Source: Basidiobolus meristosporus CBS 931.73 (lineage: Eukaryota; Fungi; Basidiobolomycota). Taken from it: a stretch of DNA of 44,368 nt. Each line of letters starts with the position of its first letter. Position 1 is the first letter of the stretch. Of the stretch, positions 4,734-26,810 are shown piece by piece. Position numbers and translations under genes: made by a program. The stretch lies in assembly GCA_002104905.1 (NCBI GenBank), contig MCFE01000697.1:1-44368 (forward strand), written 5' to 3'. The notes beneath the pieces were generated by a model. That model did no database searches. It had not been told where the DNA came from and saw only the letters and a program-made list of their open reading frames with translations.

Positions 4734-5123
4734 AAGTTCATTTATTATTCGACCATTTTATTCTAATCTTTGAGTCCCGCCCCTTCTTCATTGCTCTGTG
4801 TGAGTCCACCATGGGATCACTTTGAGGAAACGCCAAATAAACCATCATTTCTGACCACGAACGCCGCCATCTCCTGAGAAAACAAAAATGCATGTAATAG
4901 AAGGTTCGGCCATGAATCCAACCAGATTTCTCGGCCACACTATTAGTTGAATTTGCCGTGTGGTTTAATGAGCTGCATTAATGGCATAACGCAAATCATC
5001 CCCGCCTTGTACCTCTAGACAAAAATAGGTATGGCGGGTAAGGGTCAATGGCAGCTGGACGGGTGTTGAGGGCAGATGCTCTATAAAAAGATCGGCCACC
5101 TTCAACACTCTACATATCCCACA

Positions 5124-5735
5124 ATGTTGAAGGCTTCCCTTATCTCGAGAATAATCATCGCTCTATTGATCACCTTGGAACTAGCCCAAGGAGCACCGAT
5201 CGGCATCGCACAAGGGCGCATGGAAAGGCGTGATGGCCAGCACAAAGACTATGGAGTACCAGAGCCCTACGATGGGTCCGTGTACCATGGCAAACCCTCA
5301 TATCCTGACGAAGGCTATGATTTGGGCGAACCTGGCTATGATACTTATCCTAAGCCAACCTACCGACCAAAGCCTACTCCTCATCCGAAGCCTCAACCGA
5401 CCCCTACGCCCAAGCCCAAACCCACACCCACACCTACGCCGACTCCCGAGCCTAAGCCAAAGCGCAAGTCTTTCAAGTTTGGATTTGGGCTAAATATCGG
5501 GGCGAACATCGGCATCGGTGGAAAGAAAGACGGTAATGGAGTGGGCCTGGACGTGGGAGCCGGGATTGGGGCTGGGGTGCAGATCGAGACCGACAAGCAA
5601 AAAATCGATGTGAACGCAGGAGTGAAGGCGAATGTTGGAGTCGAGGTTGGGAGTGGCAAGGATGGTAAAGGACTGGATGTCGGCGTCAACACTGGTGTTG
5701 GAGCCGAGATCGGTGGTTCTGTTGAGGAGAAATGA
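5124..5735 (+). CDS. Secreted Gly/Val beta-strand family protein, copy 1 (with Tyr/Pro-rich and PT/PK-repeat linker)
   Basis: ATG 5124 downstream of CTATAAAA (~5080); signal peptide MLKASLISRIIIALLITLELAQG; dibasic sites ERR and KRK; C-terminal ~90 aa homologous to copies 2-4. Confidence 0.8.
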   Translation: MLKASLISRIIIALLITLELAQGAPIGIAQGRMERRDGQHKDYGVPEPYDGSVYHGKPSYPDEGYDLGEPGYDTYPKPTYRPKPTPHPKPQPTPTPKPKPTPTPTPTPEPKPKRKSFKFGFGLNIGANIGIGGKKDGNGVGLDVGAGIGAGVQIETDKQKIDVNAGVKANVGVEVGSGKDGKGLDVGVNTGVGAEIGGSVEEK

Positions 5736-6070
5736 TTTTGAATACTTTCGCCAGTGACAGCATCATAATTCATTAAATAAAGTGAACATTTAACCACATA
5801 ACAAACAACAGCTCTATCCATTTATATCCAATGCGTGTGATCAGTGTCGGTTGCAATTACATTCAAGGATGTCAAGATATTTCACTACGTCGTGATGTTC
5901 CCCACCCTGCATGCAAGGTCCATCATTTATGCTTCAAATAGATAGGCGGCCACTATTTCTGCAAGCCTCCTAAACGCCAAGCGTGCATGGCATAAACTAA
6001 TTCCAGAGACGATGGGAAAGTATATAAGCAAAAGCCCCTCTGTACTTCTGCAATCGTTATCGGAAACAAG

Positions 6071-6442
6071 ATGTTCAAACCCTGGTGCCTCGTTGTATTC
6101 GCACTGATCGCATTGTTCATTTGCACTTCGCCGGCGCCCATCAACTACTCGTATGGAAGTTTGCATAAACGGAGACCCTTCCGGCTCGGTGTAGGGGTTG
6201 GTCTTGGGCTGAACTTGGGTGTTGGTAGTAAAAAGGAAGGCAAAGGTGTCGGTATCAATGCTGGAGCTAATGCCGGAGTTGGCGTTCAGGTGGAGACTGA
6301 CAAAAAGAAAATCGACCTTGAGGCAGGAGTGAAGGGTGATGTTGGGGTGGAAATAGGCTCCAGTAAAGACGGGAAAGGCCTGGAAATTGGCGCCAACACA
6401 AACGTAGGGGTGGGAGTGGGAGGTTCTGTTGAGGATAAATAA
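6071..6442 (+). CDS. Secreted Gly/Val beta-strand family protein, copy 2
   Basis: TATATAA ~6022; signal peptide; APINY..LHKR propeptide; mature RPFRLGVGVGLGLNLGVGSKKEGKG...GGSVEDK. Confidence 0.85.
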   Translation: MFKPWCLVVFALIALFICTSPAPINYSYGSLHKRRPFRLGVGVGLGLNLGVGSKKEGKGVGINAGANAGVGVQVETDKKKIDLEAGVKGDVGVEIGSSKDGKGLEIGANTNVGVGVGGSVEDK

Positions 6443-6502
6443 GTATTCTGACACCATGATTTTCCCCATCGCTCATTTTATTAAATAAATAGTTTCATCC
6501 AG

Positions 6503-7048
6503 TCAATGCACATACACTAATAGAGCCGAGCAGAAGGCCAGGGCCCTCCACCCCGCACTGTATTGCTGTGTTCCTAGGTTTTTTTTGCCTTGTCCATATG
6601 CTGGGGTTTCTGGATGTAGTTTGACTTTTGTCGGCTGATTCCACATTGGGCCTTTCTCAGTATTTGTAGAAGCTGGTGTGCGTGTGGCGATAATTGAAGT
6701 CTGACCTGTAGAAGGGGTGTCTGTGTGACTAGCAGTAGCTAAACCGGAGCTACGAGTTGGGGTTGGTTCAGTTGAGGAAGTAGGAGTAGTCGATTCGAGT
6801 GTGGGCAGACTAATACTCCAGATTGAATATGCACTAGTAAAAGTAAACGAGCTCCACTCGCTTTCTTCGGAACTGTCGGAATCTTCGTCATACTCCACAT
6901 CTTCCATGCTGTCGTCATCATGCGACTCTTGCTCCGCCTCTTCCCAATCCTCACTAACCACCGAATCTTGAGGGAGTTCATCCACAGTCATTGAGTTTGC
7001 CAAGGTGAGCAGCCCCATAGCAGTGAGCAATAGTATCAAGAACCTCAT
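6503..7048 (-). CDS. Secreted acidic, Ser/Thr-rich protein, probably GPI-anchored
   Basis: Signal peptide MRFLILLLTAMGLLTLANS, D/E-rich then S/T/P-rich body, hydrophobic C-terminus (ALAFCSALLVYVH). Confidence 0.65.
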   Translation of the reverse strand: MRFLILLLTAMGLLTLANSMTVDELPQDSVVSEDWEEAEQESHDDDSMEDVEYDEDSDSSEESEWSSFTFTSAYSIWSISLPTLESTTPTSSTEPTPTRSSGLATASHTDTPSTGQTSIIATRTPASTNTEKGPMWNQPTKVKLHPETPAYGQGKKNLGTQQYSAGWRALAFCSALLVYVH

Positions 7049-7312
7049 GGTAAGTTGTAAACTGACCTGGCGTGGGTCAAAAGCTTATATATGCACCGCC
7101 ATATGCATCGGGAAAATTACCACTAGTCCGTTACTTCTTGGTAAATTTCCATCTGCATATCACAATAGAGAATGTCGGGAAATAGAAGTAGAATCGACGC
7201 GAAAGATACATGCGTACCACCAAAGACACAATCATATACAATGGCGCCAATGGCTTGGAGGATTTGTCGAACTTTACTTAAAAAGTGGTTTTGGAGATCG
7301 GTCGAATTAGCA

Positions 7313-7657
7313 ATGCGTTTATTTCGAGTTTACGTCCTCACCATCCTATTACTGACGAGGCCCGTCCTCTCAGAAACTCCTCCTGCTGAGCAGCCCTCCG
7401 GGAATGGCACACTTACTGAATCGACTACCGCGACCCTCAGTGTGACTGACCCAATACTCCCAACTTCCCAGATTGCAGTGAATGATACGGCTACGCTCAA
7501 CATTACCATGGAGCCCACCAGTTCTGTAACGTCAAGCTGGCCTCTAAGGACTGCCACTGCCGCCCCTCGTCCCACCCTTACAAGCAACTATATACGGATC
7601 ACTCCCGTCGCAATCTATATCCTGCTGAATATACTTGTCTGTGTTTTGCAGCATTAG
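7313..7657 (+). CDS. Small secreted Thr/Ser-rich protein, probably GPI-anchored
   Basis: ATG 7313 gives MRLFRVYVLTILLLTRPVLS signal; T/S/P-rich body with NGT/NDT/NIT sequons; hydrophobic tail VAIYILLNILVCVLQH. Confidence 0.6.
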   Translation: MRLFRVYVLTILLLTRPVLSETPPAEQPSGNGTLTESTTATLSVTDPILPTSQIAVNDTATLNITMEPTSSVTSSWPLRTATAAPRPTLTSNYIRITPVAIYILLNILVCVLQH

Positions 7658-7879
7658 TCTAAATTTAGATGGTAAATGAAACCCCAGCATGAAATTTATG
7701 CACGATCAGGAGGTGTATTTTGTTTGTCCAGTGCTCCCCTCAGAATATCCCTGATCCTTACACCGTTCCGATTTATACGATACGTGCCCGATTGTCAAGC
7801 TTATCTAACACATGTTCTATATATAGCCTCACCAAGCTCCCCATCAACATATCACCTATTTACTGTTCTATTCATCACC

Positions 7880-8272
7880 ATGCTTGCCATCAGATCTTTG
7901 CTCTTGCTCATTCTGGTCATTGCCACCTTGAGTGCACTTTCGTCTGCCGCCCCAATAAACTGGTCCCAAAGACTCCAGAAGCGAAGTGAGAACCCCAAGA
8001 AAAAGTCGTTCCGGTTAGGCGTGGGCGTTGGTGCCAATGTGAATGCTAGCATCGGAGGAAAGAAGGAAGGAAAGGGGCTGGGGGCCAATGTCGGTGCTGG
8101 TGTCGGCGTGGGTGTGCAGGTGGAGACCGACAAGAAGAAGGTGGACCTTGAGGCCGGAGTCAAAGGAAATGTTGGTGTCGAGGTCGGCACTAGTAAGGAT
8201 GGCAAGAGCCTGGAGGTTGGCGCCAATGCCGGAGTAGGAGCTGATGTTGGTGGCTCTATTGAAGAGAAATAA
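7880..8272 (+). CDS. Secreted Gly/Val beta-strand family protein, copy 3 (130 aa)
   Basis: TATATA ~7818; ATG 7880; signal MLAIRSLLLLILVIATLSALSSA; APINWSQRLQKR propeptide; conserved mature domain. Confidence 0.85.
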   Translation: MLAIRSLLLLILVIATLSALSSAAPINWSQRLQKRSENPKKKSFRLGVGVGANVNASIGGKKEGKGLGANVGAGVGVGVQVETDKKKVDLEAGVKGNVGVEVGTSKDGKSLEVGANAGVGADVGGSIEEK

Positions 8273-8786
8273 TATTACCAACCTGGGACATATGTCACCT
8301 GGATATGTTGTCTATTTAGTCTTTGCACGATCATGCATCATCTTTTCTATCTAATAAACCATCGATTCCCACATAAATCCCCATATCCAAGCTTATCAAC
8401 ACAACACGAAGTTGTATAATGATATTCAACACGATACACGAAATTAGTCCATGAAAATCATCACCCTAACCCACATACATTTGAATTACCTCATAACCGA
8501 TGAAAATAAGGGCTGGTCAAGGCATTAACCTTTATTTTCCCCCTTTAGAGTTGGCCTTCACCCAAATAGATATGCATGAAATAATGATTCCCCCTCGTAT
8601 TTCCCCTCGTATACTACTAAACTAAGGTATATTGCTGAAGTTGCGATGTCGATGCTAATGACGTGCGGACAACCAGATGCTACTTATCCATATCGCTTCT
8701 TAGTATATAAGCCAGACAAGATATCCACGGCTGATATAACAATCAACTATCAACTAGTGAATCTTACCACTTCTTTATCCAAGACA

Positions 8787-9179
8787 ATGCTCGCTATCAG
8801 ATCCCTGGCTTTACTCTTGGTTGTCTTTGTCGCACTGAGTATGCTTGTCTCTGCCGCACCCATCCATCTGTCCCAAAGACTCCAGAAGCGAAATGATAAC
8901 CCCAAGAAGAAGTCATTCCGGTTAGGCGTGGGCGTTGGTGCCAATGTGAATGCTAGCATCGGAGGAAAGAAGGAAGGAAAGGGGCTGGGGGCCAATGTCG
9001 GTGCTGGTGTCGGCGTGGGTGTGCAAGTGGAGACCGACAAGAAGAAGGTGGACCTTGAGGCCGGAGTCAAAGGAAATGTTGGTGTCGAGGTCGGCACTAG
9101 TAAGGATGGCAAGAGCCTGGAGGTTGGCGCCAATGCCGGAGTGGGAGTCGATGTTAACGGCTCCGTTGAAGATAAATAA
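8787..9179 (+). CDS. Secreted Gly/Val beta-strand family protein, copy 4 (130 aa)
   Basis: TATATAA ~8704; ATG 8787; signal peptide, APIHLSQRLQKR, mature domain nearly identical to copy 3. Confidence 0.85.
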   Translation: MLAIRSLALLLVVFVALSMLVSAAPIHLSQRLQKRNDNPKKKSFRLGVGVGANVNASIGGKKEGKGLGANVGAGVGVGVQVETDKKKVDLEAGVKGNVGVEVGTSKDGKSLEVGANAGVGVDVNGSVEDK

Positions 9180-9531: not shown

Positions 9532-9938
9532 ATGGTATGTAAATCTTGATTTCGATGTGTACTTGACGGATGAATAATATCTCCCCAATGGATAAGATGT
9601 TAACCTGAACTTCTTAGGCCAAGAAGGACGCTCCCGCTAAGCCTAGTTCCGGTGGAAAGAAGACCAAGAAGAAGTGGTCCAAGGGAAAGGTCAAGGATAA
9701 GGCCAACAACTTGGTCGTCTTCGACCAGGCCACTTTGGACAAATTGATGAAGGAAGCCCCCACCTACAAGCTCATCACCACCTCTGTGTTGGTTGACCGT
9801 CTTCGTATCAACGGTTCCCTTGCCCGTGTTGCCCTCAGAGAGTTGGAAACCCAAGGTTTGATCCAAAAGGTTTCCACCCACGGCTCACAATTGATCTACA
9901 CTCGCTCTATCAGCGCTGGTGGTGAGGAAGCTAACTAA
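9532..9938 (+). CDS. RPS25: 40S ribosomal protein eS25, copy a (ATG exon, intron 9535-9617)
   Basis: [37 protein letters not shown]...[25 protein letters not shown]...QLIYTR; GTATGT..TAG intron immediately after the ATG. Confidence 0.95.
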
Positions 9939-12697: not shown

Positions 12698-13361
12698 GTG
12701 GCTGAATGCTGAATGGAGAATCCTGAACGAACCCACGCTCCACTGGAACCAACACGTTTTCTCCCTCACGACCAAAAATTTTCATTTGGGTGATTTGGGT
12801 TTTTTTAATCACCAGTAATCGAGGGATTTGATCAAATATCCATTTCGTGTGTAACTCTTCCAGCCAGCTGAGGAATATTTCTGCATCCGAACATTTCATC
12901 CCCCAACCCATAACCTGTCAAGGATTCGGGTTCTGAAGAAAAGCGAATCCCCTGCCCTCATGGTTCCGTACAAATGTCTATAAGCGCACAGAGTCGCAAA
13001 GTTTACTCCAGCTGTCCTGTACAGCTGCAGAATTATCATTTTGCGCTAGTGTAGCTTTAGAGTATTAGGCTCCTTTGGAGTCAAGTGTAGGTCTTAAACT
13101 AGTTCCGTTCCTACTACGGTCCAAGTAATGTACTTCACACTGAAATCTAAATATCAAGAAAAATCATCATCCAAAACCCTATTAATTGATACGTAAATAT
13201 GTGCAAATTAATCATCAGTGTAATCTGGTCAATTCTAAATTCGATCGACATTTGTTGTTTAATCTCATTTATGGTGGAGGTATTAATCTATACATGCTCT
13301 ATATCGACGTTTGCTGTCGTGGAGCATATATACTCCTTAGTTCTATTCATAACTGGTAGCC

Positions 13362-14996
13362 ATGAACCTAGGAAACATATCCAACAACGAATTACTTTTC
13401 GCAAGCATCAACCAAGATTTCAGGTCATCGGCTCCTTACCAGCTCTATCTGATTCGTGCCTGACTGACTTTCCTGATAAATAGTTGCGTTTCTGTCGGAA
13501 CTAGAAATGGTTATAAGATATACAACAGCGACCCTTTTGGAAAGTGCTACTCCAAGTGTAGGTTTCATAACACTTTCACCGATTTCCTGGCACCTTCTAT
13601 TAAGCTTCATTAATTAGCCGAAGGAGGTGTAAGTGTAGCGGAGATGCTATTCTGTACTTCTCTCGTCGCTGTAGTTGGAGCTGGTGATGAGTCTGGATTC
13701 TCTTCAAGACGTCTGCAAATCGCCAATACCAAGGTTTGAATATACATCCCGAGTAACTTTGGTGGCTTCTACTAAGGCTTATCTCCTTTTGTCAATAGCG
13801 CGAAACCATCATCTGTGAATTGACCTTTCCAGCCACCATATTGACAGTGAAGATGAATCGTCGTAGGCTCGTAGTTGTCTTGGAAGTGCAAATCTATGTA
13901 TACGACATCAGTAACATGAAGTTGCTTCATATCATTGAGACTAGCCCAAACCCTCACGGTACCTAACCCCATTCTATCCCGAGCTTGATAATGGGCTGAC
14001 TGCTAATCAACGGTTTAATTATGCCTTAGCTGTATGCGCACTGTCCCCCTCAAATGATAACTGCTACTTAGTGTACCCTTCGCCCTCCCCCTCCCCCTCA
14101 CCATCCTCCCCATTCTCATCACCAGCGGTGACAGCAGGGAATGGCTCAGCCTCTGGAGATATTCTATGCTTTGATGCTATTTCACTTCAGAACGTAAACT
14201 ACGCTCAAGCACACAAAACCCCGCTATCGTGTATCTCTATCAGCTCGGATGGTAACATGGTTGCTACTGCAAGCGACAAGGTTGGAGGGATGGAATGCTC
14301 TTTCAACGAAACTTCGCTAACCCTTTACTCAGGGAACGGTGATCCGAGTATTCTCTCTGCCCAGCTTCCAAAGACTCTATCAATTTAGACGTGGGACCTA
14401 TCCAGCACGCATTTACTCTATATCCTTCAACGTGGTCAGCACCCTGTTGAGCGTTTCGAGTGATACGGAGACAGTACATATTTTCCGACTATCGAAGAGC
14501 CAAGAGAACGGGGGGAGAGATGGCCTCGCTGGGGAAGAACAAAGCCAAAGGCTATCGAAACGGCCTTCTGCGGGACCTGGAGTGTCGTAAGTTGTTTATA
14601 CCGTCACCAAAGCAGTTTCCAGAGGTATTCACACCCCCTATTATGCACAAGTGGAATGGTTCGCAAAACCTCGTTCCACCAGAAGCTAGCCGGGAACGTT
14701 GGTGCTCTCCTTCCGGGTTCGTTGACGGAGATGTGGGAGCCAGTGCGAGACTTTGCCTATCTTAAACTGCCTAGCGCAGGGGTTCGAAGTCTTGTTGCCA
14801 TTAGCAGGTTCGTCACCAATTCGATCCAGCCAGGAAAATTCGATTAATCAAGCTCCCGCATTTTAGCTCCACTCCAAAAGTAATGGTGGTCACCTCGGAT
14901 GGCTATTTGTATCAATATAGCATTGATTTGGAAAGTGGCGGAGAGTGCATATTGACTAAACAGTACAGCCTGCTTGACGGGTCTTCCGCAGAGTAG
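13362..14996 (+). CDS. ATG18: PROPPIN WD40 autophagy protein Atg18/WIPI, multi-exon
   Basis: [74 protein letters not shown] (FRRG phosphoinositide motif), [12 protein letters not shown]. Confidence 0.92.
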
Positions 14997-26426: not shown

Positions 26427-26810
26427 ATGGTACGTTTACTTTATCATGTCGATCGATGGATGAATGGATTTACTTAGTTGGATGTATAGGCCAAGAAAGA
26501 CGCTCCCGCTAAGCCTAGTTCCGGTGGAAAGAAGACCAAGAAGAAGTGGTCCAAGGGAAAGGTCAAGGATAAGGCCAACAACTTGGTCGTCTTCGACCAG
26601 GCCACTTTGGACAAATTGATGAAGGAAGCCCCCACCTACAAGCTCATCACCACCTCTGTGTTGGTTGACCGTCTTCGTATCAACGGTTCCCTTGCCCGTG
26701 TTGCCCTCAGAGAGTTGGAAACCCAAGGTTTGATCCAAAAGGTCTCCACCCACGGCTCACAATTGATCTACACTCGCTCTATCAGCGCCGGTGGCGAGGA
26801 AGCCAACTAA
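26427..26810 (+). CDS. RPS25: 40S ribosomal protein eS25, copy b (ATG exon, intron 26430-26489)
   Basis: Same protein as copy a; GTACGT..TAG intron after the ATG. Confidence 0.95.

Follow-up and report, generated by a model that had tools for sequence, protein, structure and literature searches.

The closest described counterparts of the proteins considered here come from quite different settings. In Ustilago maydis, aerial hyphae bear amphipathic fibrils of amyloid type that are built from the repellent peptides of Rep1 (PMC3133707). Hydrophobins and the chaplins of Streptomyces are small, secreted, amphipathic proteins of multi-copy families with a role at hydrophobic/hydrophilic boundaries, the role that we propose for the proteins considered here. 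Two long, amphipathic, Gly-rich hairpins of alternating residues per subunit are found in MACPF/CDC proteins, gasdermin and RCD-1 pores, the α-haemolysin stem and the anchors of trimeric autotransporters. Here we describe four genes, g1–g4, of Basidiobolus meristosporus CBS 931.73 (assembly GCA_002104905.1) that can be compared with each of these systems. They are intronless open reading frames (ORFs) on the + strand of contig MCFE01000697.1, the whole of which (44,368 bp) is the window analysed, and they align over a C-terminal domain of 88 aa with 60–95% identity. We regard it as a solid conclusion that this domain is a secreted, strongly constrained and strictly amphipathic four-stranded sheet that is unable to stay monomeric in water. 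As to what the sheet builds, we tentatively favour an extracellular amphipathic assembly, a film or fibre at a surface that would be an analogue of hydrophobins and chaplins.

Like Rep1, each of g1–g4 is a secreted fungal pre-pro-protein with a small, Cys-free, amphipathic product, KR cleavage being demonstrated in Rep1 and presumed in g1–g4. The design is different, however: one Rep1 precursor yields 11 short peptides, whereas g1–g4 each contain one 88-aa domain with four strands in two hairpins. There is also no known sequence relation between them, and the two fungi belong to different phyla. Thus the Ustilago precedent invoked in an earlier note on this DNA stands as a functional analogy, but not as a Kex2-cut repeat array. 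Having one domain per precursor, g1–g4 also fall outside the KEP class, which is defined by several KR/RR-flanked core repeats per precursor. With chaplins, the domains additionally share a composition rich in Gly, Val and Asn. However, four disulfides formed by eight Cys define the hydrophobins, and two Cys are found in most chaplins, while the g1–g4 domains have none and match the Pfam model of neither; the hydrophobin models PF01185 and PF06766 gave no match in the Pfam search even at E up to 1. Moreover, hydrophobin amphipathicity resides in a hydrophobic patch on a globular fold, and that of g1–g4 in a single flat sheet. Cys is absent from all the mature domains of the 11 copies known to us, namely four from B. 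meristosporus, five from the equivalent cluster of Basidiobolus ranarum, and the diverged paralogues P0004 and P0005. Together with the lack of a family match, this means that the proteins are not hydrophobins, in agreement with what the earlier note had argued.

The domain has a highly biased composition. In g3 it is 25% Gly, 18% Val and 11% Lys, its 11 basic and 11 acidic residues give a net charge of about zero, and the sole aromatic residue is Phe-2, near the N-terminus. When residue classes are compared column by column, apolar columns (accepting only Val, Ile, Leu, Ala or Phe) alternate with Gly/polar columns across four stretches, separated by K-K-(E/D)-G-K-G, E-T-D-K-K-K and S-K-D-G-K-S. 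The period-2 hydrophobic moment lies 5.5–5.8 standard deviations above that of shuffled sequences, the diverged paralogue included. There is also a 44-aa internal repeat: the first half of the domain scores 79 against the second, compared with 32 ± 6 for shuffles (z about 7), and the score was reached by none of 1000 shuffles, nor by shuffles that preserve the alternation. AlphaFold2 predicts four antiparallel strands of 17–19 residues each, placed in g3 at domain residues 2–19, 22–40, 44–62 and 69–87, with a predicted local distance difference test score (pLDDT) of 65 from four sequences and 69 from 11. Both the conserved domain of some 90 aa with four alternating strands and the pair of tandem hairpins 44 aa apart, as first read from the DNA, are therefore upheld.

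In the register that the two-residue (D/E)-G turns would impose, every apolar residue of the four strands falls on one face, and the hairpins would be closed by Arg3–Glu40 and Lys44/45–Glu86/87 pairs. The other face consists of Gly, Asn, Ser or charged residues, and in the per-column comparison it tolerates exchanges among Gly, Asn, Asp, Glu, Lys, Ser and His. Such varied polar and charged swaps indicate a face exposed to water or to a lumen. Silk-like packing of Gly faces was considered and is ruled out, because the polar-face columns take Lys, Asp, Glu, Asn and His. The two halves are not equivalent: the Gly face of hairpin 1 is nearly uncharged, and the polar face of hairpin 2 is charged. 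Lys-rich caps are present at both ends of the sheet. In the g3/g4 subfamily, both species have kept an N-x-S sequon, which lies on strand 1 and points to the polar face. The apolar stripe runs for 16–18 residues per strand, about 55 Å, which exceeds a bilayer core. No residues lie outside the four strands, and so a soluble head domain is absent.

All four domains are encoded as parts of secretory precursors with a basic n-region, a hydrophobic core of 12–15 residues, a small-residue cleavage site and then a conserved A-P-I, as read from the alignment. The 203-aa precursor of g1 (5124..5735, + strand) comprises a signal peptide (about 5124–5192), a pro-region (5193–5468) ending in KPKRK, the β domain (5469–5732) and the stop codon (5733–5735). 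The 123-aa precursor of g2 (6071..6442, +) has a signal peptide at about 6071–6133, a short pro-piece ending in HKRR and the domain at 6176–6439. Those of g3 (7880..8272, +) and g4 (8787..9179, +) are both 130 aa long, with signal peptides at 7880–7948 and 8787–8855, pro-pieces at 7949–8005 (containing LQKR and PKKK in g3) and 8856–8912, and domains at 8006–8269 and 8913–9176; the g3 and g4 domains are 95% identical. At least one canonical KR or RR precedes the domain in all nine cluster copies of the two species, as LQKR, KPKR, HKRR or SKRK. Of the diverged paralogues, P0005 has LEKR, while the P0004 gene model has neither KR nor RR. These dibasic pairs are confined to the stretch between signal peptide and domain, and the T-D-K-K-K that joins the hairpin repeats contains no KR. 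The prediction of a short propeptide ending in KR or KRK is thus right about the dibasic site, but not about the length in g1, whose pro-region is about 92 aa, nor about the end in g3 and g4, where KKK stands immediately before the domain and the canonical KR is 7 residues upstream.

These features suggest a mechanism, which we outline as a working model. A kexin-type protease would cut at KR or RR between signal peptide and domain, freeing a Cys-free protein of 88–95 residues. The freed protein would fold into a flat sheet in which four antiparallel strands form a meander, its two hairpins having tight (D/E)-G turns with Lys on either side. One face would present 32–34 side chains, all Val, Ile, Leu, Ala or Phe, and the opposite face Gly, Asn, Ser or charged residues. 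Such an apolar sheet, of roughly 1000 square ångströms, cannot face water in a monomer, and three ways of burying it can be envisaged: an open edge-to-edge film or two-layer fibril, a barrel embedded in lipid, or a soluble face-to-face oligomer. Since the edge strands are compatible, we propose edge-to-edge assembly. Strands 1 and 4 could pair in register, the Lys-rich N-terminus of one unit meeting the Glu-Glu C-terminus of the next, so that units would join outside the cell into an open amphipathic β-sheet. This may take the form of a monolayer film at an air/water or wax/water boundary, or of two-layer fibrils with the Val faces buried, and it may coat hyphae, conidiophores or conidia and alter their wettability or adhesion. 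It would then do the work of hydrophobins, chaplins and Ustilago repellents with a design that is unrelated to theirs.

Several properties lead us to prefer surface assembly. These are the net charge of about zero, the lack of an aromatic girdle, an apolar stripe that outruns the bilayer core, the absence of a soluble head, the sequon conserved on the polar face of the g3/g4 subfamily, the presence of two conserved Ser/Thr-rich genes of glycosylphosphatidylinositol (GPI)-like type inside the cluster, and purifying selection combined with a dosage-type homogenisation of copies. The ecological background fits a surface coat as well. Basidiobolus is an early-diverging, frog-gut fungus whose spores are aerial, sticky and discharged by force. 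Few Zoopagomycota have hydrophobins, which occurred in 1/6 genomes in a survey that did not sample Basidiobolus (10.1101/2022.08.19.504535); in Ustilago, amphipathic amyloid peptides released by Kex2 coat the aerial hyphae (PMC3133707); and B. meristosporus has the most Kex2-processed repeat precursors of any fungus surveyed (PMC7329392).

A number of observations weigh against a surface coat. The confidence of the structural model is only moderate (pLDDT 65–69). A polar face dominated by Gly is odd for a surface that looks onto water, and is typical of lumen positions in membrane β-barrels. Membrane barrels and hairpins in the pore state make up all of the nearest structures. The family seems restricted to Basidiobolus, when a general solution to aerial growth might be expected to be more widespread; the wall-protein neighbours are circumstantial; and exact look-ups place the genes only on the two genome assemblies, no transcript-like contigs being found.

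Some of the same observations would be accounted for by an oligomeric β-barrel pore without a head domain, in which two to four or more cleaved units close into an 8–16-stranded barrel in a target membrane, be it that of gut bacteria, of competitors or of host cells, with the Val/Leu face turned to lipid and the Gly/acidic face lining a water-filled lumen. We rank this second to the surface assembly and consider it doubtful. Its appeal lies first in weak family matches, since the Pfam models OMP_b-brl (PF13505; best 24.0 bits against a cut-off of 28.7) and MspA (PF09203; best 21.8 against 22.9) recur below threshold in both species and span about four strands, and the domains share with both families the alternation of apolar with Gly or polar residues and the charged turns. 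Secondly, an exhaustive structural search was topped, at Z 7.9, by hairpins only of MAC C8, the Neurospora RCD-1 pore and perforin, with gasdermin pores nearby (Z 6–7.9) and the NalP barrel superposing over 83 residues at 1.7 Å (Z 6.0); the structural neighbours in the Atlas are fragments of TonB-receptor and autotransporter barrels. Gly at lumen-facing positions, Lys-rich caps at both ends of the sheet and a strand pattern like that of outer membrane proteins (OMPs) point the same way. Four strands per subunit are known from trimeric autotransporter anchors and TolC, and Basidiobolus lives among gut bacteria.

However, every one of these family matches is below its cut-off, and by the structural tool's own calibration a Z below 8 denotes a common arrangement only. 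The searches otherwise gave nothing that would tie g1–g4 to pore formers: aerolysin/ETX-MTX2, leukocidin, MACPF/CDC and gasdermin families were not matched in Pfam or among PDB sequences, two profile searches of PDB sequences returned nothing, and so no OMP or MspA chain, and Foldseek against the PDB found nothing at E ≤ 0.001. Unlike OMP_b-brl and MspA proteins, which depend on Sec/BAM targeting, g1–g4 combine a secretory signal of eukaryotic type with a dibasic site, and the genome and protein searches described below gave no bacterial relative. They also differ from the known β-pore formers, in which large soluble domains drive oligomerisation and hide the hairpins before insertion, in being hairpins only, in lacking a significant sequence or profile match and an aromatic girdle, and in having a longer apolar stripe. 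We know of no characterised protein β-pore former that does without a soluble cap, rim or receptor-binding domain, and g1–g4 have none. The net charge near zero is not the cationic one that would suit a pore, the stripe of about 55 Å is longer than a bilayer core, the conserved sequon would sit on the would-be lumen face, the highly charged turns would need to cross the membrane, and selection is purifying, not diversifying. The bolder form of the proposal, that these are the first natural eukaryotic "all-stem" β-barrel pore formers, in which 88-residue two-hairpin units form a Gly-lined barrel without head domain or assembly machinery, seems to us slightly more doubtful. Everything computed so far is compatible with both functional readings of the earlier note, amyloid or surface fibres and β-barrel pores.

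The third way of burying the apolar face is a small soluble oligomer, with two or more units forming a long β-sandwich or a barrel with an apolar interior that might transport or sequester lipids, sterols or other hydrophobic compounds and would make no films, fibres or pores. A face-to-face dimer is the simplest burial of all, and the charged polar face of hairpin 2, with the Lys/Glu caps, would help to keep the particle soluble; on the other hand, the Gly face of hairpin 1 is almost uncharged, which is poor for solubility. Foldseek gave weak rows to lipid binders of the TULIP type (SPLUNC1, latherin, JHBP and LBP, E 0.05–0.5), but these are not significant and have TM-scores of 0.2–0.36. No features of a ligand pocket are visible, and a sandwich would still have free edge strands, which encourage association without a defined end. 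We find this arrangement improbable.

The pro-region of g1 bears on a further reading, in which there is no ordered assembly. This region is rich in Tyr, Asp, Gly and Pro and then in Pro-Thr and Lys, includes at least 8 Tyr, and contains the motifs K-P-S-Y-P and Y-P-K-P-T-Y ahead of a (Thr/Lys/Gln)-Pro repeat. The B. ranarum orthologue has a region of the same kind, its character being kept between species while its sequence is not (nonsynonymous divergence, dN, 0.37). We take it to resemble cross-linkable adhesive or extensin-like proteins. The family could accordingly be imagined as a matrix or adhesive component, a glycine-rich wall or mucilage protein comparable to plant glycine-rich proteins and held by cross-links or entanglement in the wall or in the sticky tip of capilliconidia, the Tyr/Pro-rich N-terminal part of g1 performing the cross-linking. 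Such a likeness to cross-linkable or extended wall proteins, found in g1 and its orthologue, and the wall-protein-like neighbours in the cluster speak for it. Nevertheless, the idea is quite improbable in our view, since the strict alternation, fixed turns and strong conservation of the domain are too regular for disordered filler, the Tyr-rich part is missing from g2–g4, and in g1 itself a KR site separates this part from the domain. As a separate observation, the codons of the Pro-Thr repeat in g1 are of the reverse-complement type of those of the Gly-Val domain.

The preference for a surface assembly draws in part on how the family has evolved. B. ranarum (GCA_040143965.1) has an equivalent cluster between a DEAD-box helicase gene and RPS25, TAPR1 and pentatricopeptide repeat (PPR) genes, as in B. 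meristosporus. It contains five intact copies: an orthologue of g1, Pro-rich linker included, an orthologue of g2, which is a called 130-aa gene, and three of the g3/g4 type. The fifth intact copy (13750–14139 of JASJQH010000090.1) has its own signal peptide, and a 227-aa "Ribosomal_S25" model at 13086–14139 of this contig joins it to RPS25; the fusion probably reflects an error of annotation. Both species also have, at syntenic positions, a diverged fifth paralogue, P0004 (ORY02008.1, L001 8001–8591) in B. meristosporus and P0005 (L003 7585–8203) in B. ranarum. These two proteins have 35–38% identity to g3 over the domain and share a C-terminal extension of 30 aa, S-M-P-W-D-I-S-M-H-D-I-D-P-E-E-F-K-R-L..., which hardly varies between them and which the cluster copies lack. 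UniRef automatically names P0004 an "Adhesin domain-containing protein", which Pfam does not reproduce.

The g1 domain is 87.5% identical between the two species, compared with 80% for the PPR orthologues. Across the mature domain, dN is 0.06–0.18 (0.058 in g1) with saturated synonymous divergence (dS above 1.5 or not computable, likewise saturated in g1), corresponding to dN/dS of about 0.06–0.1, while the signal and pro-regions have dN of 0.23–0.48. The g3/g4-type copies cluster into species-specific clades, and g3 and g4 differ far more at synonymous sites of the pre-region (dS 0.88) than at those of the domain (dS 0.095), a mosaic that implies recent duplication, gene conversion or partial homogenisation. 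That young copies have been homogenised in both species suggests a demand for dosage.

Such biased coding sequences call for care about the strand. Because Gly and Val codons of the GGN/GTN type leave an antisense frame open in which the third positions coincide, substitution patterns alone cannot separate the strands. It could be imagined that the products are not real, the true gene being a Pro/Thr-rich antisense frame, or that the ORFs arise by chance in a GNN-rich repeat. The wobble-coincident antisense frame is indeed open across the domain in g1, g3 and g4, and the public annotation reads a different antisense frame, also open, through g2. But the wobble-coincident frame has a stop inside the g2 domain and is interrupted in 6/11 copies overall, whereas the sense frame is free of stops in 11/11. 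All copies line up at the start codon, the signal peptide and the stop codon, TATA boxes and poly(A) signals agree with the + strand, and sense genes are called in two independent annotations, those of B. meristosporus and B. ranarum. The chance that the products are not real is thus very slight, and the antisense gene is rejected, no frame but the sense one being open throughout the 11 copies.

Beyond these two species, the family could not be traced. There was no match above threshold in Pfam, NCBIfam or the PDB, so the statement that it is an unrecognised one holds; in NCBIfam, the only match was to a glycine-zipper lipoprotein (YiaD, NF053611) at 29 bits against a cut-off of 175, and g1–g4 have neither a lipobox nor an OmpA-like domain. 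A profile search of 1.84 billion representative proteins recovered no bacterial relative. It gave 4 matches, one of which, P0004, is a true paralogue. P0001 and P0002 are phage tail-fibre-like repeats that we rejected as homologues (hhalign probability 2.8%); their likeness is confined to a T-D-K-x-K-(L/V)-D...E-(A/S)-G motif, and P0002 lies within a phage structural module. The remaining match, P0003, involves a 33-residue stretch of a protein of 3910 aa. With g3 and with a five-member alignment as query, a search of proteins by word index recovered P0004 and P0005 and nothing else, and a feature search of the ESM Atlas gave no usable match.

At the DNA level, pattern and tblastn searches found no relative in 185,579 prokaryotic species genomes, in metagenomes or in viral contigs, so that an origin by transfer from bacteria is without support. 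By comparison, blanks in the protein collections are weak evidence, given that g1, g3, g4 and the B. ranarum copies have been annotated as genes and yet are missing there: g1–g4 and the five B. ranarum copies are absent from a collection of 15 billion proteins and from its 50% representatives, in which their neighbours are present. Small proteins of strongly biased composition may be systematically missing from such searches. Provisionally, then, we consider the family confined to Basidiobolus, the DNA scans having covered prokaryotes, metagenomes and viral contigs. No description of it turned up in the literature searches. With its members annotated as hypothetical proteins only, it is a new sequence family with a new design, although the task that this design serves is most likely of a known kind.

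The family thus offers a small, disulfide-free and strongly conserved amphipathic β-sheet unit, and illustrates the extent of undescribed secreted biology in Basidiobolus. If it forms films or fibres, it would be an independently evolved answer to the problem that hydrophobins solve and a simple scaffold for protein surfactants and coatings. Should it form pores, it would be a natural β-barrel channel of minimal design, the counterpart of designed transmembrane β-barrels, and a new fungal weapon against gut bacteria or host cells.

The genes stand in a conserved setting. An earlier claim of four related genes, each with its own TATA box and signal peptide, is borne out by the ORFs, the alignment, tblastn, which finds exactly four copies in the window, and a reading of the promoters. 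The TATA-like boxes lie 42–83 bp 5′ of the ATG on the + strand, at positions kept between orthologues: TATAAAA at 5082..5088 for g1 (−42, as in the B. ranarum orthologue), TATATAA at 6021..6027 for g2 (−50, compared with −53), TATATAT at 7818..7824 for g3 (−62) and TATATAA at 8704..8710 for g4 (−83, with B. ranarum copies 4 and 5 at −85 and −84). An A(A/T)TAAA signal follows each stop codon at 37–146 bp. Between g2 and g3 are two further genes for secreted proteins with a C-terminal hydrophobic tail (GPI-like). One encodes a 181-aa acidic, Ser/Thr-rich protein, presumably of the wall or surface (6503..7048, − strand), and the other a 114-aa Thr/Ser/Pro-rich protein (7313..7657, +). Since both are conserved at the equivalent place in B. 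ranarum (38% identity, E 3e-28, and E 3e-8, respectively), we can speak of a conserved cluster of six or seven genes for surface or secreted proteins.

In the public annotation of B. meristosporus, g1 (as a 203-aa gene), g3 and g4 are called at the coordinates given above, without a Pfam family, but g2 is missing. In its place there is a 276-aa model on the minus strand, at 5927–6991, which runs antisense through g2. The start of this model is a Met inside the Ser/Thr-rich secreted gene at 6503–7048, for which reason it lacks a signal peptide, and the model then splices into the antisense strand of g2. It is probably a mis-call that hides g2, as the B. ranarum annotation has two separate genes here.

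The window also encodes an aspartokinase and a PPR protein. Two RPS25 genes are found on this one 44-kb contig, at 9532–9938 (+, 107 aa) and 26490–26781 (+, 97 aa), and the GC skew rises to between +0.2 and +0.36 across 39–43 kb of the window.

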